DNA of 64,000 bases from contig NC_133619.1 of NCBI RefSeq assembly GCF_048593235.1, positions 636,904,558 to 636,968,557 on the forward strand. Reading direction: 5' to 3'. Both the position numbers and the translations under genes were made by a program. This stretch comes from Sminthopsis crassicaudata (lineage: Eukaryota). Each line of letters opens with the position of its first letter. The first letter of the stretch is position 1. The notes below the pieces were generated by a model that was not told the origin of the DNA, did not search any database, and was given only the letters and a program-made list of their open reading frames with translations. Below, one piece after another: positions 13,201 through 44,277 of this stretch.

Positions 13201-14072
13201 ATGTCCGGGGTGGGGACAGAGTCAGGACAAAGATCTAGAGTGGATGGGCCAAGAGGGACCAGGAAGCCAGCAGTTAGGAGCCTCTCAGCCCCTGGAGAGG
13301 CAGCCGGTTTAGGGAAGGTTGGAAGCACACGAGGAAGCCCTGAGAGGACCCGAAAGCAGCCCCCTGCACGTGGGCAGCTCCCTTCTCCAAAGCTGCCAAT
13401 TTCGAGCTGCCTTCTGCTCCATCAGGGCTCAGGTTTCGTGTTTGCCCTTTGCCCCCATTCGCCGCTCCTTTGGAGCCACACATTTCCCAGATGCGCACAT
13501 CCGTCACAAGTCCTTCTGCGAGCTAGCCCTGGGGGCCAAGTCGGGCAGAAAGCCTAGCTCCTGCCTTCCGCCGCCGAGACCGTGCTGCGCGTCCCGGCAG
13601 TCTCCGAAGCTCCAGCAACAGGGGGCGGAGAATGGGGACAAGGGCGGCATTCCAGGCCACAGACGCCCCAGAACCAAGAGGCCCAGAGCTAGGGAGAAGG
13701 TGCTCCGAGGTCACGGAGGAGACCCCCTCCCCCCATGGCACCTCAGAGACTCTCTACAACCACCACCGCCTTTGATGCACCGCTGCCATCACGTCTCCCC
13801 TCCCCCTCCCGCTCTCGGTCCCACCTCCATCTAGACTCTCTGAGGCCCCCTCACCCCCACACACAGAGCGAGGCTCTCCGTCCCCCCCCACACTGAGGCT
13901 GTCCCGACCTCCCCCCCCCCACATCAAGGCTCTCCGCCCCTACCCCACACAAGAAGGCTCTCGACTCCTCCCCCTCCCCCCATAAGGAGGCTCTCCGGGC
14001 GTCCCCTCCCACACCGTCCCGGCCTCGTCCCAATCATAGGGAAGGAAGGAATTTAAAATTTGGAGACCTCAC

Positions 14073-14700
14073 CGCCACGGCCTCGCCTCCTCCTCGTCCT
14101 CTGCTCCGCGGCTCCCTAGTCGAGCCGGGCCTCCGCTCCCGGGCCTCGCCGCCGCCGCCGCGTTCCCATAACGGCCTCTCGCCGTTGGGCCCTTTCCCGC
14201 CTTTTCTCCCAGGCTCGCTCCCGCGCTGTGGCGGTTGGTGGAGAACGACAGAGAGGGGGAGGGAAGGAGGGATGGGTCTCTCCAAGCTTAGTCCCAAAGT
14301 GCCGTGAGAGTCCTGAAGTCATCGAAAAGCTCTTCCGGGATAGTTTGGCCGTGTCCTGTTGTGGGTCCTGCCACCACCCTTCCTCTCAGGTTAGAGTGGT
14401 CGAAATGGTGACAGAGGTTTCTTTCCCGCCAAGATGAACGGTCCCCTCTGTGATTGGTCGAGGAGCTTGCACCTCAGGGCACGTGAGGGAGAGGAGGTGG
14501 GAAAGAGATAGGAGGAGGCTGCCCTCACTGCTACCTCTGATTGGTTGCAGAACTCGTGCCTCTTTTCCCTATTGGCCGAGGTGAGTCAAAGGGGAGGCGG
14601 AGACTCTTTGTTTTGCTGTAAAACTGGCTTCCCGTCAAGTGACGGATTGGAAGTTGTCCGGGTCAATAGGTAAAAGAGGTGTATGTCCCGGCATCCCCTT
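14073..14700 (-). promoter_or_regulatory. CpG-island promoter and non-coding first exon, probably the upstream ZBTB32 promoter
   Basis: CpG-rich; four ATTGG (CCAAT on minus) at 14453, 14540, 14571 and 14646; E-box CACGTG 14480-14485; donor GTGGCG|GTGAGG at 14072. Confidence 0.65.
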
Positions 14701-15029
14701 CTCCTGCCTCGGCCGGAGGGAAGCAGGCTCGGGTCCCCAGAGAGGAGCAGAAAAAGGAGGCAGAGGCGAAGGAGGGCTCTCCGACCCATCTAGGCCGTCC
14801 CTTCCTTTTGATCGACAGATAGGGAGTCCGCTGCTCTTTCCGCTGCATTAAGCAGCTTCTCGTGGCGGGCCTCGCTTCCGCAGTCCCAAGGGTCCCTATG
14901 CCAATTTCAGCACGAGGTGCAGAAGGGATTGTACGCTTCACATGGAAGCTGTTGGAAGAATGACAGGCAAAGCCCGGCCAGCCGTGGACCGTGCGTGGTG
15001 CAGCATGCCGAGAGCTTCATATAGCAGGT

Positions 15030-15420
15030 AGCGTGCACCGTGCAGTGCATCAGATCACATGCAGCATGCAGAATGCATCTTGTAGCAGGTAGTGTGTCGT
15101 GTGCAGTGCATCAGATCGCGTGCAGCATGCATCGTGTAGCAGGTAATGAGCAGTGTGCAGTGCATCAGATCGCGTGCAGCATGCATCGTGTAGCAGGTAA
15201 TGAGCAGTGTGCAGTGCATCAGATCGCGTGCAGCATGCATCGTGTAGCAGGTAATGAGCAGTGTGCAGTGCATCAGATCGCGTGCAGCATGCATCGTGTA
15301 GCAGGTAATGAGCAGTGTGCAGTGCATCAGATCGCGTGCAGCATGCATAATGTAGCAGGTAATGAGCAGTGTGCAGTGCATCAGATCGCGTGCAGCATGC
15401 ATCGTGTAGCGTGCGTCATA
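15030..15420. repeat. 54-bp minisatellite, about 7 copies
   Basis: tagcagg recurs at 15137, 15191, 15245, 15299 and 15353. Confidence 0.95.
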
Positions 15421-16787
15421 CAACGTGCAGAGAGGGCAGTGTGCAGCTCGCGGGGTCCCTGCCCCCCATAAGGATCTCTTGGCGCTGAACTTGGAGAGGC
15501 CCCCAGCAAGGGTTCCCATCTTGTGTCCTCAACTCCCAGGGCAGATTCTCTCTCGTTTCATCAGCCTGACTGTGGCTTCCCGGCGTGGAAAGAAGCGCCT
15601 CCCAAATGTCCCATCCATTCCCCTGCCTCTCTGCTGCCCATCCGCGCGGGCCCCTGCTCCCTTCTTCACTGAGCCGGCGGCTCCCTGGGCCCAGAGGGCA
15701 AGCCGGGAGAGAAGAGGGAGAGAAGGGAGAGAAAGCTCCCCCTGGCTGGGAAGTCCCTGCTTCTGGGACCTGCAGCCCCGGGGCCTCTGCGGGATCTATG
15801 CGCATGCTCACCTGTAAAAGGGGCTCCCTGTTGGGCAGGGCAGCTTTGGGGCTCAGATGGGACAAGGGCTGCAGGGTTGGGGAAGCCCTGCTCTGTCACA
15901 CGGGACGGATGATCCGGGTCCAAGCCCTCCTGAGCAGCCGCTCTTGGGAAAAGGGGGTGAGGCCAGGGAGAGGTTTGAGGAACCAGGGCTGGGGCCGGGA
16001 TGCGATTGGTCCACGGGGCTCATCAGATCTTTCCCTTCTCTTTGCCCTTTGGCTTCCTCCACCGAACTCGGACCATCTTTCCCTATGACACGCAGCCTTG
16101 CCTCAATGCCGTAGCCATGGAGCATCCCTGACATGAGCCACAAGTTCCAGCCTTTTGAGCCGCATATTCTGAAATCCTCCAGGAAATATCCAACCCCATA
16201 CCAGCTATAACCTGGTTTCTCTCTGCACCCCCCCCCCAAAATGTTGTCATTCGACTGGCCAGTCCGATTCCAATCGTTACTAAGGAGATTTAATGAAAAT
16301 AATTATTAATTAATGAGTTTAATTAATTTAATGAAACTAATTAGTGAAACAAGTGTCCATCAGCCAGTCATCAAGTTATCCTCGGCCTGAGTTAATTCCC
16401 GTAAGCCCCTCCTCCTGTGCTTATTCCAGAAAACAGAGGTCGCCCCTTTCGGACCCTTGCCTAAGCCCTGAGCCCTGTGCTCCCCCTCCCCCTCCAGGCG
16501 CACTGGGCTGAGACGGCTCCCTCCCCTCTGCTCCACTCCCCTTTCTCACTCATCTCTCCTCCGCGGCGCGGAGCTCTCCTAACGGGAACGAGAAACTGGC
16601 AAACCTGTTCTACTCGTCCAGGGCCCAGCACGTGACTGCTCAGCCCCTCTCGGACCTGAGGGAATGCAGCCAAACTGGAAGTCAAGGAGGAGGGCACGGA
16701 CCAAGCTACCTCTCCCTCCCCCGCCCGCTCTTCAGCCCCAGAGCCTGCCAGCCAGAACAAACCGGCGCAGAAGGAGAAAAAGAAGTC

Positions 16788-16793
16788 TTTATT
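16788..16793 (-). terminator. UPK1A polyadenylation signal
   Basis: AATAAA on minus, about 240 nt after the stop codon. Confidence 0.65.
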
Positions 16794-17030
16794 CCATACA
16801 AAATAGGTCAGGCAGACGAGGAAAGGCTCCATGACTTAGTGGGAACTAGGGATGCTTGGGGCGGAGGAAGAAAGGGAATGTAAGAGAACCCCAAAACCGG
16901 GAGGAGGAATTGGAGAGAGAGGAACAAATGAGGGAGAGTTCGGGGGGAATCTCTTTCCAAGGAGCCATCGGTGGGGCCCAGCAGGAAGGGGTGATGCTTC
17001 TGGGGAAGGGGGACTGCTTCCGGGAGGGTC

Positions 17031-17075
17031 TCAGAGTACCGTGTAGTAGTACATGGCCAGCAGCATCACGGGGAG
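17031..17075 (-). CDS. UPK1A: Uroplakin-1a, last coding exon
   Basis: cag|LPVMLLAMYYYTVL*. Confidence 0.95.
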   Translation of the reverse strand, partial: LPVMLLAMYYYTVL

Positions 17076-17264
17076 CTGAGGAAGGAGACAGGAGTGAGGA
17101 GCACGTGCTCTGCCTCCGCCCAGCCCCCAGCGGAGAGGGAGAAGGGGCTCTTGGAATGGAGAAATAACGATTAATTCCAACTTCCCCCAATTTCTTAAGC
17201 ACCCCCTTCCCAGCACCCTTCAAGACGGGCTTTTGCTTTCCCAAATCTTGGCTTTTCCTCTCAC

Positions 17265-17348
17265 CGTCCACATAAGGATGGCAAATCCAAACCAAGAGAT
17301 ACCCCAGGTGTAGCTGTCGATGGCGTGGCCAAGATGCTCAAAGCAGCC
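17265..17348 (-). CDS. UPK1A: Uroplakin-1a coding exon
   Basis: GCFEHLGHAIDSYTWGISWFGFAILMWT with AG/GT boundaries, 84 nt. Confidence 0.96.
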
Positions 17349-17963
17349 CTGCAGGGAAAGCGTTGGGGAGGGAGCTGAAGCAACGGCGAGGTGAACTTAC
17401 AGCAACACTTTCTGGGATGGCTAGGAAGGAGACATCGAAGGGACCCCCCAGCTGGGGAATGGCCCAGCAAGCCGTGGGATATTACTGCGCTATGAGAAAT
17501 GGTTTCAGAAAAACCTCGAAGAGCATGAACTGATGCAAAGTGAAGTGACCAGAACCAGGGAACCTCGCACACGGTAACAGCAAGATTACTCGGTGAAGAA
17601 CTCCTAATGCTTCCAAGCAATACAGTGATTCGAGGGACTTAGGACGAAGCTTGCTATTCTCCCAGAAAAAGAACTGACTTGTTTGAATACGAACGGAAGA
17701 GTGCTATTTTCACCTTTCCTTTTTTCCTTTTATTCACATCATGCAAAATGACTAATATGAAATGATCCCACATCGATAACCAATATCTGATTGCTTACCA
17801 TCTCAGGGAGAAGGGAGAGATAACATTTAGAATGCAAAACTTTAAAAAAAGTAAATATTGTTTAATATGTAATTTGGGGACATATGTATCTATGCATAAG
17901 GTGATTGATAGGGGGAAAAAAAAAAAAAGCAACGGTGGATTGAAAGGCAAGGTCTGTTGGTAC

Positions 17964-18143
17964 CTTGGTGAAGAGGTAATCTTGGTGGCCAAGCCGACAT
18001 CCCTCCTCGTTGAGAGGGTTGAAGTTGGCATCCCTACGGCAACACAATGGGGGCCAGGGGAAGTCGACCTCTGGGGTGGCGTCCCGGAAGGCTGATGTGA
18101 AGTTCACCCAGTCGAGGGGCCCTGAGGTACCACAGCATTGTTG
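17964..18143 (-). CDS. UPK1A: Uroplakin-1a coding exon (large extracellular loop)
   Basis: QQCCGTSGPLDWVNFTSAF...EEGCRLGHQDYLFTK, tetraspanin CCG motif, 180 nt. Confidence 0.96.
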
Positions 18144-18313
18144 CTGGAAAGACAGGCAGGGGAGGCAGGGGGAAATGGCATAGGACAAGAGACTCCATTT
18201 AATGAGGACCAGTATGGGGCACAAACTTGGGTTTCAAAAGCTAGGTATCCGAGGTTAACACCCCAACTTCTGGATTCCCGCGTCACCCTCGTGCCCACCA
18301 AGAACGCCCTCAC

Positions 18314-18421
18314 CTCAATCATGACTCGATCCCAGAAACGAGTCAGTTCCTGGCCCTGGTCCGTGGGAGCATTGTAGAATGTCAGCATCTGTTTGGTAAT
18401 GAGGGCCGGGTTGGACACCAT
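18314..18421 (-). CDS. UPK1A: Uroplakin-1a coding exon
   Basis: MVSNPALITKQMLTFYNAPTDQGQELTRFWDRVMIE, 108 nt. Confidence 0.96.
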
Positions 18422-18799
18422 CTGTAGTAAGAAGAAGAAGCAGCGAGGCAGAAGAATGGGCGCTTCCCTAGAACCAGGAGGGGAAAGTTCCTCTGGGAGT
18501 TCATTCTCGCCCCTCTCCCTGCTCTGCCCTGCACCTGCCTCCAGAGGGGTCCTTAACCCCTTGTGTCCTGGACCCCTTGGGAAATCGGTGACCTGCAGGT
18601 CCCTTCCTAATCCACAATCATGTTATTAAATGCACAAAACAAAATGTCCCTTACTGGCAGTAATTATTAAAATCTTTTAAACTACAAAGTCACAGACTCT
18701 AAGTTAAGACTCCCTGCTCTGACCCCATATTTCCAGTCTCCCTCCACAAACGCCCTCTGTCCCCTTTCCCCCACCCCTTCAATCCTCCTGGGTGCTCAC

Positions 18800-18874
18800 A
18801 TAGTCTCTGTGGGTATATGACGTGATGCTTGAGGCACATTCAAACACATAGACAATCAGCATTAATACCAGGTA
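18800..18874 (-). CDS. UPK1A: Uroplakin-1a coding exon
   Basis: YLVLMLIVYVFECASSITSYTHRDY, 75 nt, tag/gtgag boundaries. Confidence 0.96.
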
Positions 18875-19135
18875 CTAGAGAGGAGACAGAAGAAAGTCAA
18901 AAAGGAAGGGAACAGGAGCTGGCACGGGGGGAGCCCCGAGGAGGCTGGTTTGGGGTCATGTTTAGATGGTTCCATTTAAAAGGGAATGGATTCAGATGGG
19001 AATGGCTAACTGGAATTGGATCAGCAAACTGTGGTTCACAGGCTTTTGGAATTAATCCCATTGGAGAGAAGGGAAGGCTCCAACTAAAGGCCATTTCTGC
19101 TATTACCCATTTCCCTCCCCACCCCCACTCCTGAC

Positions 19136-19336
19136 CGTGAGAAGCATTCCTCGGCTGTGGCACAGCGCTGCTCCTATGCCAAAGCTGGCCACCACAAAAA
19201 AGGAGAAGCCGGTGAAAATGGCAATCCAGGCCCCTGCGAAGACGTCATCCTTGCCAGAGACCCCGAGCAGGGGGTAGACCCGGTACTGATCGGCCGTCAC
19301 CCAGACAGTCTCCGCAAACAGCGCCAGGCCTGACAT
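19136..19336 (-). CDS. UPK1A: Uroplakin-1a coding exon
   Basis: MSGLALFAETVWVTADQYRVYPLLGVSGKDDVFAGAWIAIFTGFSFF...GMLLT, 201 nt. Confidence 0.96.
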
Positions 19337-19915
19337 CTAGACCAAGGGACCAAACAGGCACACGGAGTCTCTCAGCCCCTTTGGTGCCCCTTGAAATCCC
19401 CCATGCCCCTAACTCCAACCATTCAACAATAATTAGTGACCACAAGCCTTGCTGCTACCTATTCCCCTAATCTTCTTTTAATGCCCCCTGTAATGCCTTA
19501 TGTCACCTGCCCTGTTTTTTTGATATATTCAGACCACATTTGAGCATATATATATATATATATCCATTCTCCCCTGTTTTCATGAATATGATTCCATATT
19601 ATCAGACTGCAGAGCAACCAGATCGATGTAATTTTTTTTCTTTCACTCAGCTAATCCTGTTTCCCCTTTATACTAACTTAAATCCCTTGCTAAGAATTTC
19701 ATCATTGCCAAATGAAGGTTCTGGGCAGTTGGCGATAGGGCAAAGGGATCCGCAAAATCCAAGGTCTTGCCTCTCACTCAGTATTGCCCCATTAATCCCT
19801 GTGCCCTGGAATTTCCTCTTCTCTTTCCCATAATCCATTTTTAGCTCCCCAAATCGTCAGTTTTTGTATCCCCTACGAGAAGACAGAGAGATAAAGGGCA
19901 CTGGGATCTATTTAC

Positions 19916-27515: not shown

Positions 27516-27863
27516 TTACTTTGCTTCAGCCACTGGTTTGAACTCTTCCCGTTCTATCTGTAGTAACCTAGCTTTTTCTTCTTTCTCTATCTCCATCTGT
27601 AGTTTAACCTGCAATTCCAGCAACTCTTGCTGTGGCATTTTATACTCTATACTGTCATACATACGCACTAGCTCTAGGTTGCTCCCTCTCCGAGCTATAT
27701 TTAATGGGTGTGGGGATAGCCTTCTCGGAGCTTGATTACAAACTTCCTGCTGTTCAGCGGTGATCTCTGTTAAAAGATCTTCCATCTGGCTCTTTAACCT
27801 CTTTATATAAGCATTATATTCAGCTGTGTCCTTGAGCCTGATCCCAGAGTTACCTGGGTCCAT
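27516..27863 (-). pseudogene. Truncated gag N-terminal ORF of the provirus
   Basis: 115-codon ORF starting about 100 nt after the PBS, coiled-coil/acidic composition; position is the main evidence. Confidence 0.6.
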
Positions 27864-32104: not shown

Positions 32105-32239
32105 TTAGACCAACTCCCCTCGGAGGTGGAAGGGCAGGTAGTCGTCCCCTGCCCCAGGCAGGTCCTCAGACACCAGGTCATAAATCCTTCCGGGCTCCCC
32201 ATGTGCTCCCCCGGGCCATTCTCCGTACTGATAAGTTCC
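32105..32239 (-). CDS. NPHS1: Nephrin exon 29 (C-terminus)
   Basis: GTYQYGEW...IYDLV...LPFHLRGELV*, similar to the human C-terminus LPFELRGHLV. Confidence 0.85.
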   Translation of the reverse strand, partial: GTYQYGEWPGGAHGEPGRIYDLVSEDLPGAGDDYLPFHLRGELV

Positions 32240-32373: not shown

Positions 32374-32489
32374 CATTTGGGCTCCTTGGTAGGGAGCTTC
32401 CCAGGCACCAGACACGGGGTACAGCCTTTCAACTTCATCATAAACAGGCCCGGGGCCTGCCACCTCCTCATAGTCATGACCCCAAAAGC
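32374..32489 (-). CDS. NPHS1: Nephrin exon 28
   Basis: GFWGHDYEEVAGPGPVYDEVERLYPVSGAWEAPYQGAQM, phase 1 to 0. Confidence 0.85.
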
Positions 32490-32595: not shown

Positions 32596-32689
32596 CTCGA
32601 TATTGAGGTTCCTCTTCAGGTGTTGGGGGAAGCTGGGGGCTGAAGTCCTTCATAGAATGGTAATAGGGTTCCATCTCTGCTGAGCTCTC
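32596..32689 (-). CDS. NPHS1: Nephrin exon 27
   Basis: ESSAEMEPYYHSMKDFSPQLPPTPEEEPQYR, 94 nt. Confidence 0.85.
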
Positions 32690-34101: not shown

Positions 34102-34383
34102 TAAATCTATATTTTAGATAGCCAAATGGCTGCAGTTAAGTGAGCCCTGGACTGGAATCAGGAATCTGGAGTTAAAATCTGGTCTCAGATATTTAGCCTC
34201 AGTTTCCCCCTATGTAAAAAAGGAAAATGATAGCATCCACCTCTCTGAGTTGTTGTGGTGATCAAACAAGATCATACTTTTAAGTGCTTCATCAACCTTG
34301 ACGCTCTCTATAGATAGCAGCTGTTACTATCAAAGTCAAGGACCCAGCTCCTCGGAACTCTCCTCTCCAGCCCGAATTCTCAC

Positions 34384-34453
34384 CGTGGTGCTTGGGGTGT
34401 GCCGGCCACTCCATCGGCTCTCTTCATACTCATTTCCCGTTCTCGACTCTGAC
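34384..34453 (-). CDS. NPHS1: Nephrin exon 26
   Basis: SESRTGNEYEESRWSGRHTPSTT, phase 2 to 0. Confidence 0.82.
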
Positions 34454-34569
34454 CTGCCACGGGGACAGAGGAGTCTGCCCATCATCTCTCCACAGAGACC
34501 AGAGCTACGTCTCCTGCTTCCTCCCCACCTCCTCCCCACCTCCTCCTCCCATCAGTCCTCCCTCCTCAC

Positions 34570-34596
34570 CCTTCCTCTGACTTTTCCTCTTGGTTC
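34570..34596 (-). CDS. NPHS1: Nephrin micro-exon 25 (27 nt; now needs a phase-2 entry)
   Basis: ccctcag|G AAC CAA GAG GAA AAG TCA GAG GAA GG|gtgag = NQEEKSEEG, similar to human ISEKTEAG. Confidence 0.7.
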
Positions 34597-34751
34597 CTGA
34601 GGGCAGAATGAGAGTAAAGCAGTTAAGGCCAGCCCATCTGGGGGGGTCCCGAAGGGTGCTGGGAAATCAGGCAGGCTCTTCCCTTTGCATACAGAGGACC
34701 ATCGCCCACATCCTTCTCTCCTCCTTTTGTCCCTTGGCAGGATGTCCTTAC

Positions 34752-34812
34752 CCTCTGAGGAAAGCCCACGACGTTTCTGCCTCCAAGAGCACGTATCCTA
34801 TGCAGCATTGAT
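34752..34812 (-). pseudogene. NPHS1: Remnant of nephrin exon 24 (transmembrane exon): 3' part only, with indels
   Basis: INA/CIGYVL/WRQKRRGLSSE|gtaag aligns with human [20 protein letters not shown] only across two indels; hydrophobic helix and original acceptor absent. Confidence 0.75.
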
Positions 34813-35348
34813 ATTTAATTCAGTCTTAATTTATTTGCCTCCCAAATGGAGGTTTTCTCTCACTATTATATCCTGTACATTGATATTTAATTCAGTCTTA
34901 ATTTATTTGCATCCAGTCACCATGGAGTGTTAGTCCATCTACAAGCACTGATTCAGCGCTGAGCTACTGGAGTTACAAAGGCAAAAAACATCCCTCAATG
35001 TGCTCACAGTCTAAGTGTTAAAACCACCGTGTACACACAAGGTATAGAGGCAGGCCAGATGAGAGGTGCGTCAGAGGGAAGGCCCCGGCTCCGGGGGGAG
35101 CAGAAGTGGGGTTGAGGACCCCCAAGAGGCGAGATTTGAGCTGTCTGCTTTAAGGAAGCTAGGAGAAAGTGTCCCCGTTGAAAAGGCGTCCAGTGAAGTG
35201 ATGGATTGTTTGTCCAAGGAGCAGTGAGGAGGCCAGAATATTTATCTGCAAAGGCCTTACTGCCGAGAGGGCTGGATCTGTCCTCAGATAACCGAGTTCA
35301 AATTCCAGCCATGCCGTCCGTGTGACCCGGAGCAAATCATTTAGCGGC

Positions 35349-35535
35349 CAGCGGTCCTCACACTCTTTAAATAGGGGCCAGTTCCCTGTCCCTCAGACTG
35401 TTGTAGGCCGGACTAGAGTAAACAAAAGCTCCCACTCCGTCTCTGCCCCTCAGCCCATTTGCCATAACCCGAAGGGTCGCATAAACCTCCTCAGTGGCCG
35501 CATCTGGCCCACGGGCCCTAGTGTGAGAACCCCTG
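35349..35535 (+). mobile_element. Non-autonomous hAT (OC1/OposCharlie-like) MITE nested in a MIR-like SINE
   Basis: TIRs CAGCGGTCCTCACACT / AGTGTGAGAACCCCTG; same internal sequence as 58319-58499; imperfect TSD atttagc. Confidence 0.8.
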
Positions 35536-36621
35536 ATTTAGCCTCTGAAACCTTAGTTCCCTAAACTGGAAACTGGAAGAATTAGGCTTGATGAGCCAGG
35601 AAGTCCTGTCCAGGGCTAAATCTGTGATAGTCCTTTGTCGCTGATCAGAAATATGCAATGACTCCCGCTGCAAGCAGGACCACGGGTACCTCTCCTGGAC
35701 GGTCAAAGCCCTTCCTGATTGGGCCCTCCTCTCTAATCCCATCTCCCATCATGCCCAGCACACACCTCTTCCTTGTTCCTGAAATGCCCTCATCTAGGCA
35801 AATATCAATGAGTTTCCAAAGCCCAGCTCAAGGCTCACTTCTTTCACGACTGCCCCAAACATTTAAGAGCAGTAGTAGTGATGACTGGTAATATGTAATA
35901 ATAATGTAATATGTAATGTAATAATGTAATAATTTAACAATAACGTAATGTAATAATAATAACTAGCATTCTGTATAACTATTTAACGATTGCAAAGTGC
36001 ATTACAAACATCTCCCTTTATCCTCACAGCAATCCCGGCGGCTAGATGCTATTATTGTCTCCATGAAACGGAGGAGGAAACGAGGAAAACGGAGGTGAAA
36101 TGGCTTGCTCGGAGTCACACGGCTAATAAATATCAGAGACCCGATTTGAACTCCAGGCTCCCGATTCCAGCCCAGGGCCCGTCTCTCTAACGTGCAGATT
36201 TCCTTTAACATTGGATTACAGTGCACATTATTTTGTAGTACTTGCAGATCACTTCATGTACCTATAAATCTTATCTTTGCAACAGGACGGGATGGTATCT
36301 AAAAGCCAGAGCCCTAGCTCGCCACTCTCTGTTTTTCTCCCGGTGCCTTGTTCAGAATTGGGTACCGAGAAGGCATTGTACTGTATGATGAACTGAACTG
36401 GGTGGAGCAGGAAAGAAGAGTGTGGAAGGGCTTCTGAAAGGGTAAGAAAGGAGAGAAGGAAAGGAAGCTGAGCTGACAGGTCCAGGTGTCAGGAAACTAA
36501 AGGGATGTGGACGGGGCCTTATGGAGGGAGCAGGAGGGCTTTGGAAAAGTAGGCGGGGATAGTAAGACACACTTCTTTCCTAGTAGAGGAATAATGGAGA
36601 TGGGCTCCGGGAAGACCTCAC

Positions 36622-36672
36622 CAGATTCTATAGGGATCTGGTCTTCCGTCTTCTCGGATGAGTCTTCAAGGC
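36622..36672 (-). CDS. NPHS1: Nephrin exon 23
   Basis: ttctag|GC LEDSSEKTEDQIPIES G|gtgag, similar to human [20 protein letters not shown]. Confidence 0.8.
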
Positions 36673-37364
36673 CTAGAAAAAGAAAATGGATTGGCTCCGA
36701 GATAGCAGGATGCCCTTGTCACCTGGCTGACCACGGTTTCCCTCTCCCAGCCAAACCTCGGTGAAGATTCTCTGAGTGGAGTCTGCCACAATTCCTATTA
36801 ATCGCTAAAGCAGAGCGGATGGCCAACTTCCCCACCCCTTCTTTCTTTCCTAGACTTCAGAGCACCGCCGGGGCTTCCTATTCCTCCCCCCGGGGCCTTG
36901 GGGAGCCAGAATGCGGGTGTTCTCTCGGGGTCCACCCTCATCTCCTCCTTCCTTCCCTCTCTTCATTCAGGGATGGAGGAGATCTCAGAGACATCCAGCC
37001 CGGCTGATAAATACAAGCCGTCTCTGCTGGGAAGAGCCAGGGCTGTGGAGACGGTGGCTTCTGAGTCCTTTCCGTCGGGGACGCTGAGACCTTCCCAGCA
37101 TTAACCCACACCTCGATCCACTCCCTCTGGAGCCAAGCAGGAAGTCGCTCTTCCACTTGGCAGTCCTTAACCGTGGGGGACCGCGCTAACGTCTCCCCAT
37201 CCTCCACCAGGCCGGGTCTTGGCCGATTCTCCGTGTTGGTCACCGCTCCTCCGTCTTGGTTGCCCTTCCCTGGGTGCCCGGGCCCCGAGGCCCAAGGCAA
37301 GAGAGCTACAGTTCCTGCTCTTCCCAAGGACTCCCTAAATTTCCCTGCCCCTTCCCCCAGACAC

Positions 37365-37546
37365 CTAGGGTGGTCACCGGGAGCCGGATGCCTCGATCGG
37401 CCAGGTCGCTGTCCCCCAGAGCGTTGGTGGCCAGCAGAGAGAAGTGATACAGGGTGAAAGGCCGAAGACCGCCCACAGTGAAGGCAGTGGCTTGAGGAGG
37501 GGAGACGTCCACGTACAGGTGCCCCGGGGTCTCCGGCGCCTCGTAC
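37365..37546 (-). CDS. NPHS1: Nephrin exon 22 (FN3)
   Basis: [20 protein letters not shown]...[22 protein letters not shown], 182 nt. Confidence 0.92.
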
Positions 37547-37632
37547 CTGCGGGGTCAGAGGGTGGCAGAGGAGCGGCCACTCAGCTCCGCCTGCTCCCGC
37601 CCCGATCCCCGCCCTCGCAGCCAAGGCCCCAC

Positions 37633-38368: not shown

Positions 38369-38514
38369 CTGGGAGAAAGTGAGGAGTGGGGGGGAGTCGG
38401 GGGATGGGGGCTGAGATCAGGGCATGTGGTGCTGGCGGTGGGGGAGGGGGGAGCGTTTGGGACAAGTGGTGTGGTCAGTGTGGTCGGCCGGGACTTGTGG
38501 GAAACAGCATCGGG

Positions 38515-39220
38515 AGCGGGAGGAGGCGCGGGGTTAGGAGCTGGGTGCGAGGAGCCAGGTGGAAGGGCCCGGGAGGGTTAGGAGCTGGGTGCGAGGAGCC
38601 GGGTGGAAGGGCCCGGGAGCGGGAGGAGGCGCGGGGTTAGGAGCTGGGTGCGAGGAGCCGGGTGGAAGGGCCAGGGAGCGGGAGGAGGCGCAGGTTAGGA
38701 GCTGGGTGCGAGGAGCCGGGTGGAAGGGCCAGGGAGCGGGAGGAGGCGCGGGCTAGGAGCTGGGTGCGAGGAGCCAGGTGGAAGGGCCAGGGAGCGGGAG
38801 GAGGCGCAGGTTAGGAGCTGGGTGCGAGGAGCCAGGTGGAAGGGCCAGGGAGCGGGAGGAGGCGCGGGGTTAGGAGCTGGGTGCGAGGAGCCGGGTGGAA
38901 GGGCAGGGAGCGGGAGGAGGCGCGGGGTTAGGAGCTGGGTGCGAGGAGCCGGGTGGAAGGGCCAGGGAGCGGGAGGAGGCGCGGGTTAGGAGCTGGGTGC
39001 GAGGAGCCAGGTGGAAGGGCCAGGGAGCGGGAGGAGGCGCAGGTTAGGAGCTGGGTGCGAGGAGCCAGGTGGAAGGGCCCGGGAGCGGGAGGAGGCGCGG
39101 GGTTAGGAGCTGGGTGCGAGGAGCCGGGTGGAAGGGCCCGGGAGCGGGAGGAGGCGCGGGGTTAGGAGCTGGGTGCGAGGAGCCGGGTGGAAGGGCCCGG
39201 GAGCGGGAGGAGGCGCGGGA
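38515..39220. repeat. About 59-bp G-rich minisatellite, about 12 copies, nephrin intron 19
   Basis: gggagcgggaggaggcgcggggttaggagctgggtgcgaggagccgggtggaagggcc units. Confidence 0.95.
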
Positions 39221-42583: not shown

Positions 42584-42619
42584 CTGAGGAGGGAATCGGA
42601 GCCTCCGCTGTGGGCCTCG

Positions 42620-43020
42620 GCCCACGGCCCCCCCACGGGCCTCCCCCACGGCCCCCCCACAGTCCCCCCCCACGGCCTCCCCCCACGGGCCTCCCCCCCA
42701 GGGCTCCCCCCACGGGCCTCCCCCACGCCCCCCCCACGGCCTCCCCCCACAGCCCCCCCCACGGCCTCCCCCCACGGGCCTCCCCCACGCCCCCCCCCCA
42801 CGGGCCTCCCCCACAGCCCCCCCCACGGGCCTCCCCCACGCCCCCCCCCACAGCCCCCCCACGGCCTCCCCCACGGCCTCCCCACGGCCCCCCCACGGCC
42901 TCCCCCCACAGGGCTCCCCCCATGGGCCTCCCCCCACGGCCCCCCCACAGTCCCCCCCACGGCCTCCCCACAGTCCCCCCCCACGGCCTCCCCCCACGGG
43001 CCTCCAGGGCTCCCCCCACC
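42620..43020. repeat. C-rich short-period minisatellite (ccccccacggcct), nephrin intron 9
   Basis: Read directly; G-runs on the transcribed (minus) strand. Confidence 0.95.
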
Positions 43021-43075
43021 CCCTCGGGGTGGCCCAGCTCTGGCTCCGCGGCCCGGCTCCCACCCTAATCCTCAC

Positions 43076-43233
43076 ATCAGTGACCGTCACATCGGTGGGG
43101 ACGAGCTCCTGCCAGCCCAGCCACCAGCGCAGCAGCACTCCCGGGTTACTGGACTTGGTGAAACAGGAGAAGGACGCAGTCTTGTTCTCTTCCAGGCTTG
43201 CGGAGCCCAGGATGATGATGGAGCTGGGGGGGA
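43076..43233 (-). CDS. NPHS1: Nephrin exon 9
   Basis: FPPSSIIILGSASLEENKTASFSCFTKSSNPGVLLRWWLGWQELVPTDVTVTD, 158 nt. Confidence 0.93.
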
Positions 43234-43394
43234 CTGGGAGGAGGGAGACGGGGATGGGTGAAGACGGCGCCGGACAGAGATAGGCCGGGCAGCGGGGGTA
43301 GGGAGGCTTTCCCCGGGGCTCCCACATGGGGCACAGACTTTCTAGAGACCTTGGCTCCTTTGCCACCCCCAAGGTCACCCTGTCATGGCGCTCC

Positions 43395-43985
43395 CTCTGC
43401 TGGGGCCCCCCCAATCTCTGGGGGGGTCTGCTCCCTCTGCTGCCCCCCCAATCTCTGAAGGGGGTCTGCTCCCTTTGCTGCCCCCCAATCTCTGAGGGGG
43501 TCTGCTCCCTCTGCTGCCCCCAATCTCTGAGGGGGGTCTGCTCCCTCTGCTGCCCCCCCCAATCTCTGAGGGGGGGTCTGCTCCCTCTGCTGCCCCCCAA
43601 TCTCTAAGGGGGGTCTGCTCCCTCTGCTGCCCCCCAATCTCTGAGGGGGGTCTGCTCCCTCTGCTGCCCCCCCCAATCTCTGAGGGGGGTCTGCTCCCTC
43701 TGCTGCCCCCCAATCTCTAAGGGGGGTCTGCTCCCTCTGCTGCCCCCCCAATCTCTGAGGGGGGTCTGCTCCCTCTGCTGCCCCCCAATCTCTGAGGGGG
43801 GTCTGCTCCCTCTGCTGCCCCCCAATCTCTGAGGGGGTCTGCTCCGTCTGCTGCCCCCCAATCTCTGAGGGGGGTCTGCTCCCTCTGCTGCCCCCCAATC
43901 TCTGAGGGGGGTCTGCTCCCTCTGCTGCCCCCCAATCTCTGAGGGGGTCTGCTCCGTCTGCTGCCCCCCAATCTCTGAGGGGGGT
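43395..43985. repeat. About 39-bp minisatellite, about 15 copies, nephrin intron 8
   Basis: ccccccaatctctgaggggggtctgctccctctgctg units. Confidence 0.95.
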
Positions 43986-44277
43986 CCTCGTTGGGGTCTC
44001 TCTGGGAAAGGACTGTCCCTTCTCTGAGTGTGGCTGCACTCAAGCCTATGGAGCGGAGCCTTTCATGGAGGAGGAGGACATTCTCCCCTCGTTGTGAGGA
44101 ACCTGGTTCTGCTCCTCCTCAGCCGGGGGTCCCGGGGTCTCTGTCTGAGGACTTGTTCCCCAAGCTCTGCCCCCTTCTGGGGGAACTCTGAGGGGACGGA
44201 GGCAGAGAAGGGGGACAGACTGTGAGGCTGGCGGCTATCGGGGCGGAACGGGCGGGGGCAGCTCCCAGGACCCTCAC

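Follow-up and report, generated by a model that had tools for sequence, protein, structure and literature searches.

The NPHS1 (nephrin) gene in the window (the whole stretch of DNA analysed, 64,000 nt) is confirmed, at the level of the assembled sequence, to lack its membrane anchor, as a sequence-only reading of the locus had claimed. The further claim of that reading, that selection has hard-wired the gene to make a soluble nephrin, is not supported by the assembled locus. Our best explanation, held with about even confidence, is a young anchor-loss allele, fixed or not. The membrane anchor of nephrin is held to be indispensable for the mammalian slit diaphragm, since null alleles lead to a congenital nephrosis that is lethal. 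Fixation of the lesion would make this marsupial a natural experiment on a mammalian filter without anchored nephrin. A segregating allele would mean that the reference genome carries a recessive disease allele, which matters for colony management and for users of the reference, and an artefact would point to a fault in the assembly. In all three cases, the NPHS1 annotation at this locus should not be taken at face value.

The nephrin gene and its neighbourhood

The coding span of NPHS1 lies on the minus strand (as do all the exons and lesion features described below), from an ATG at 47508 to a stop at 32105, as established by an exon-by-exon match to colugo nephrin together with the gene model. 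The exon plan was that of the colugo locus, which comprises 29 exons; their lengths and phases were obtained by exact mapping of the colugo protein, and each exon was then located in the window. Exons 1-23 (47508 down to 36622) are colinear with those of the colugo and encode the signal peptide, eight Ig-like domains and one FN3 domain. They sum to 3154 nt, or 1051 codons, join in phase and contain no stop, as previously read, and their AG/GT splice sites are canonical throughout. Exon 22 (37365-37546, 182 nt), which encodes the second half of the FN3 domain, has the length and phases of its colugo counterpart, and the peptide of exon 23 (36622-36672, 51 nt, phase 1-1) is identical to that of the Tasmanian devil. 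The cytoplasmic tail is likewise intact, again in agreement with the earlier reading: exon 26 (34384-34453, a 70-nt span) carries the NEYEESRW motif, exons 27 (32596-32689), 28 (32374-32489) and 29 (32105-32239) together carry the YDEV and YDLV motifs, and all four are open, with canonical splice sites, and end at the canonical stop and C-terminus.

Exon length is identical to that of the colugo in 22 of the 29 exons, and the phases are the same in every exon found. Outside exons 24 and 25 there is no frameshift in about 3570 nt, which bears out the earlier statements that indels are absent elsewhere and that the gene is not undergoing random decay as a whole. This absence of frameshifts, together with the 22 exons of exact colugo length, indicates that the base-level accuracy of the assembly is good. 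Long G+C-rich minisatellite arrays occupy nephrin introns at 38400-39200 and 42600-44000 of the window and give rise to spurious long open reading frames in several frames.

The best matches of the gene in the protein library are nephrins, with an amino acid identity of about 62% to eutherian proteins and 83-85% to those of wombat and koala. For the full-length query, only eutherians appeared among the matches listed; a shortened query that excluded full-length eutherians retrieved wombat, koala and devil, and the exon 22 open reading frame used as a protein query gave no match. Judged from its sequence and its neighbours, the window gene is the true NPHS1 orthologue of a dasyurid marsupial, related to the devil and clearly diverged from it (dS about 0.3); the SINE content of the window likewise points to a dasyurid.

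The gene order across the window (1-64000) is ZBTB32 remnant, UPK1A-like tetraspanin, NPHS1 and COX6B, all on the minus strand. The UPK1A-type tetraspanin lies downstream of nephrin, at about 13-20 kb of the window, and COX6B upstream, at about 60.3 kb of the window. The devil locus (1-33820 of the devil sequence) shows the order COX6B, NPHS1, tetraspanin, in the same orientation as the window. In the colugo, NPHS1 is arranged head-to-head with a KIRREL2-like gene, which is the eutherian arrangement, whereas no KIRREL2 or other Ig-coding sequence was found within 16 kb upstream of the window NPHS1; comparison of the gene orders of window and devil with that of the colugo indicates that nephrin is located differently in dasyurids than in eutherians. 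The position between UPK1A and COX6B1, with KIRREL2 not nearby, had raised the suspicion of a stray duplicate, which was rejected since the devil arrangement is identical and this is therefore the normal place of the gene in dasyurids. The interval that separates the tetraspanin gene from the 3' end of nephrin contains a 115-residue ATG open reading frame of coiled-coil-like character (27516-27863, minus strand), which yielded no Pfam match.

The exon 24 lesion and its predicted products

The single transmembrane helix encoded by exon 24, a hallmark of nephrin, is missing from the window gene. In the nephrins of koala and devil the helix exon is complete (...WFLLPILFALG...SCIGYVLWRQ...), with exon 25, of 9 residues, and then the tail coming after it, and the devil state is taken as ancestral because the koala protein shares it. 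Compared with the devil (alignment A3), about 170 nt are gone from the window: the last ~100 nt of intron 23, including the polypyrimidine tract and the AG acceptor, and the first ~70 nt of exon 24, which code for the helix. As had been noted, exon 24 thus retains only its 3' end, a remnant of 54 nt (34752-34805) that encodes CIGYVL and then, after a +1 shift, WRQKRRGLSSEG, followed by a donor GT at 34751-34750 (GTAAGG). A distance of 155 nt separates the remnant from exon 25 downstream, which is the spacing of other mammals; its nucleotide-level alignment with colugo exon 24 was uninformative. The missing helix-coding half and its acceptor were not found anywhere in the 64,000-nt window.

The missing segment is replaced by 31 nt (34806-34836; direct-repeat family D2, alignment A3) identical to a block located 72 nt upstream (34878-34908), which is present as a single copy in the devil. 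The earlier reading was thus right about the loss of helix and acceptor, in whose place a local copy now stands. Short homologies (GGAnGC, CAATG) occur at both edges of the junction, and a deletion accompanied by a templated insertion and by edge microhomologies is the mark of a single event.

About three indels had been counted in exons 24 and 25, and three derived changes are indeed present. The one placed after INA, however, is the deletion junction itself, where ATCAATG derives from the duplicated block, and the other two compensate each other. These are an extra T at 34785-34786, between ...GYVL and WRQ... (the frame of devil and koala being ...GYVLWRQ..., and the change being polarised by the koala protein), and the derived loss of an A from an A run at 34590-34591 in exon 25 (34570-34596), which is thereby 27 nt long against 28 nt in the devil; the lost A cancels the extra T. 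Measured from the junction, the two are 20 and about 215 nt off in one direction, and an 11-nt deletion is found at 20 nt in the other. From the intron indel density in alignment A3, about 0.7 indels would be expected over the whole lineage in the 73 nt that contain these two extra 1-nt indels. The substitution density beside the junction is ordinary, with about 91-95% identity to the devil. The compensating pair may have arisen in the same error-prone repair event, may be an older compensated pair of a functional gene, or may be due to chance.

As assembled, the locus can encode only anchorless products, and no membrane-anchored nephrin. Joining exon 23 to exon 25 gives an out-of-frame message of 1096 residues, the last 45 of which are unrelated to nephrin, with a stop in exon 27 and two junctions downstream of it. 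With the ancestral 28-nt exon 25, skipping exon 24 would preserve the frame; the lost A puts the same skip out of frame here. The alternative is a 46-nt cryptic exon ("24c", 34752-34797), preceded by a weak AG at 34799-34798, which links exon 23 to exons 25-29 in a reading frame of 3642 nt that encodes 1213 residues and ends at the normal stop. This product has no helix, carries the tail in frame and contains 14 unrelated residues in place of the basic juxtamembrane stretch. On a weight matrix derived from the 27 acceptors of the gene itself, the acceptor of the cryptic exon scores -14.9, and the real ones range from -4.5 to 16.9. Consequently, although the tail exons with the YDxV motifs and the C-terminus are intact and constrained, they are reached in the frame of the ectodomain only by way of a very weak cryptic acceptor, and exon 23 is likely to be joined to exon 25, whose acceptor is strong.

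In the mechanism we propose, a single event would have deleted about 170 nt and inserted the templated 31 nt, through template switching or end joining, and would have eliminated the branch point region, the intron 23 acceptor and the helix-coding half of exon 24. Splicing would then proceed mainly from exon 23 to exon 25, giving the frameshifted message with a signal peptide, eight Ig domains, the FN3 domain and 45 unrelated basic residues, which would be expected to undergo nonsense-mediated decay. Passage through the cryptic exon, as a minor route, would yield the anchorless 1213-residue nephrin with its tail. The allele would accordingly be classed as a loss-of-anchor allele and not as the product of long selection for a secreted protein.

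Selection, read words and competing explanations

Substitution rates between window and devil were calculated for the usable devil exons only (exons 1-8, 11, 12, 23 and 25-29). The ectodomain (455 codons) has a dN/dS of 0.19 at a dS of 0.30, and the tail (136 codons) a dN/dS of 0.34 at a dS of 0.145; neither ratio is near 1, the value that the sequence-only reading had associated with a young pseudogene. With koala as the outgroup, the lineage-specific amino acid changes of window and devil number 17 and 17 in the ectodomain and 5 and 5 in the tail, and the tail shows no indel in 415 nt. The intron indel density is about 0.9% per lineage (alignment A3), such that about 30 indels would be expected under neutrality in 3570 nt, compared to none observed. 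Relaxed constraint and scattered disabling lesions, by which unitary pseudogenes are recognised, were not observed. With the tail still under constraint and the two lineages changing at equal rates, the lesion is either recent compared with the devil split, or not fixed, or not real.

The share of sampled sequence words present in whole sequencing runs provides additional evidence. In the DNA runs of two samples, the same 0.82 of the words sampled from 34300-37600 is present, which speaks for a real allele; the remaining 18% occur in no run, which is about the share of SINE-like repeats in this interval. Several RNA runs contain 0.35-0.47 of the words of the exon-dense nephrin stretch, the exonic share of which is about 0.50, and the closeness of the two values fits a spliced nephrin mRNA. 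One of them, run X19, holds 0.47 of the exon-dense stretch (about 94% of its exonic words) and only 0.06 of 34300-37600, as would be predicted from exons 22, 23 and 26 alone. Four further runs (X12, X13, X15 and X17), which are not among the holders of the exon-dense part, contain 0.07-0.15 of the words of the mostly intronic 34300-37600; this signal may reflect non-nephrin transcription in the interval or genomic DNA in the runs.

Two points weigh against a young anchor-loss allele. The two extra 1-nt indels exceed its prediction, which leaves a complex single event, chance or an older compensated pair to account for them. In man and mouse, null alleles of nephrin are lethal, and a homozygous state would thus need explaining. 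A local mis-assembly would mean that exon 24 is complete in the real genome and that the assembler or a gap-filling patch made the junction and its duplicated block. We consider it unlikely. In its favour, the marsupial NPHS1 region is difficult to assemble (in the devil reference, exons 14-22 are missing and exons 9, 10 and 13 are ragged), small indels cluster around the junction, and 18% of the words sampled from 34300-37600 are missing from every run. Elsewhere in the gene, however, about 3.6 kb are free of indel errors, the sequence beside the junction shows an ordinary substitution density, being about 91-95% identical to that of the devil, the word gap is about equal to the share of SINE-like repeats, and a deletion with a templated insertion and flanking microhomology is typical of a real mutation.

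A species fixed for an anchorless gene and selected to secrete the nephrin ectodomain, to which KIRREL proteins would bind as to a decoy or a ligand, would explain why only anchorless products are encodable, why the lesions are confined to exons 24 and 25 and why the ectodomain is under purifying selection in a gene that is expressed, as the RNA word shares suggest; moreover, a splice variant without the transmembrane segment is known in man and rodents (PMC3144718). The tail does not behave as this proposal predicts. A long-secreted ectodomain would have no use for the cytoplasmic tail and leave it free to decay, and a tail as conserved as that of the devil (5 changes against 5, no indel in 415 nt, dN/dS 0.34) makes long-standing secretion unlikely. 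The skip product, furthermore, is out of frame and stops early, the in-frame route depends on a weak acceptor, and the rate of the ectodomain is unshifted (17 against 17). The proposal of a hard-wired soluble nephrin is therefore not supported, and we consider it improbable. An old unitary pseudogene, in which nephrin would have been dead for a long time in this lineage, we regard as scarcely credible: the three lesions in exons 24 and 25 and the report that the chicken genome yielded no nephrin (PMC3278613) can be cited for it, against which stand the absence of stops and frameshifts from the remaining 3570 nt, for which neutrality predicts about 30 indels, a dN/dS of 0.19 with rates equal to those of the devil lineage, intact splice sites outside the lesion and RNA word shares that fit a spliced mRNA.

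Anchoring could also be retained through another exon, either one that is absent from the assembly or one recruited from intron 23. The earlier reading had found no other transmembrane-encoding exon between exons 23 and 25, and a hydropathy scan of all frames from exon 22 to exon 26 likewise revealed no convincing substitute. Scanning intron 23 for AG/GT-bounded segments that are open in phase 1 and contain a hydrophobic stretch did produce one marginal candidate, at 35245-35008 on the minus strand (alternative starts at 35158 and 35140), with a 17-residue hydrophobic stretch of Kyte-Doolittle hydropathy 1.75. Its length (1 mod 3) fits the 27-nt exon 25 that has lost an A, its donor (ACT followed by GTGAGC) is good and is absent in the devil, its hydrophobic 17-19-mer is followed by an Arg residue, and its use would account for the constraint on the tail. 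On the other hand, the same criteria applied to the whole window select 13 loci in 128 kb (0.10 per kb), corresponding to a p of about 0.18 for a 2-kb intron, so that the candidate does not exceed chance; the hydrophobic stretch includes three prolines and reaches a hydropathy of only 1.75; the acceptors are weak (2.9, -5.5 and -5.7); and the 0.06 share of run X19 in 34300-37600 is already predicted by exons 22, 23 and 26. We therefore rate anchoring by a replacement exon as very unlikely.

There is perhaps a small chance that the deletion is fixed in this dasyurid, and possibly in sister species, in which case a mammal would be filtering its blood without anchored nephrin. At most a secreted ectodomain might then be available, or an anchorless nephrin might be held in the slit by KIRREL1. 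Exonisation of the intron 23 piece at 35245-35008 in place of the helix exon would be a variant of the fixed deletion, and a less likely one.

Comparison with other nephrin genes

The literature searched contained nothing on nephrin in marsupials, and the closest parallel is the chicken, whose genome is reported to lack the gene (PMC3278613). The chicken would thus have a vertebrate kidney without anchored nephrin, and the same would apply here if the lesion is fixed; unlike the chicken, however, the window retains the whole gene, expressed and under purifying selection. A woodpecker record annotated as "LOW QUALITY PROTEIN: nephrin" (P0088) suggests that the absence of nephrin may not hold for all birds.

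Among the marsupials, the NPHS1 genes of devil and koala follow the same 29-exon plan, with an identical exon 23 peptide and a near-identical tail, and the neighbours of the devil gene are also the same. In both, however, the helix exon is complete (123 nt in the devil) and exon 25 measures 28 nt, neither of which is true of the window. The devil reference (LR735556.1) has a defect of its own: the interval 13900-19500 of the locus, with 60-75% G+C, lacks nephrin exons 14-22, and exons 9, 10 and 13 are ragged. This gap explains the 846-residue RefSeq model and represents either an assembly fault or a real loss. The wombat model (P0280, UniProt A0A4X2MAG2) ends after exon 23, within intron 23 (...GKKSVLLSPPT), without helix and tail, and is probably an incomplete gene model. 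The hint that it gives of a conserved read-through tail in intron 23 was rejected, owing to frameshifting indels between devil and window.

The splice variant of man and rodents that skips exon 24 (PMC3144718) likewise lacks the helix. The colugo exon 24 measures 120 nt in phase 1-1, and its omission keeps both frame and tail. In man and rodents, the soluble form is a matter of regulated splicing; here, the helix is lost in the DNA, and the same skip is out of frame due to the lost A in exon 25, the join of exons 23 and 25 coming to a stop after 45 codons. The window gene also resembles the truncating or anchor-removing NPHS1 alleles of congenital nephrotic syndrome, in which a single lesion likewise interrupts an otherwise intact, constrained and expressed gene and predicts a protein that is truncated or unanchored, and it differs from them in that the lesion occurs in the reference assembly of a wild or colony marsupial and is accompanied by a compensating +1/-1 pair.
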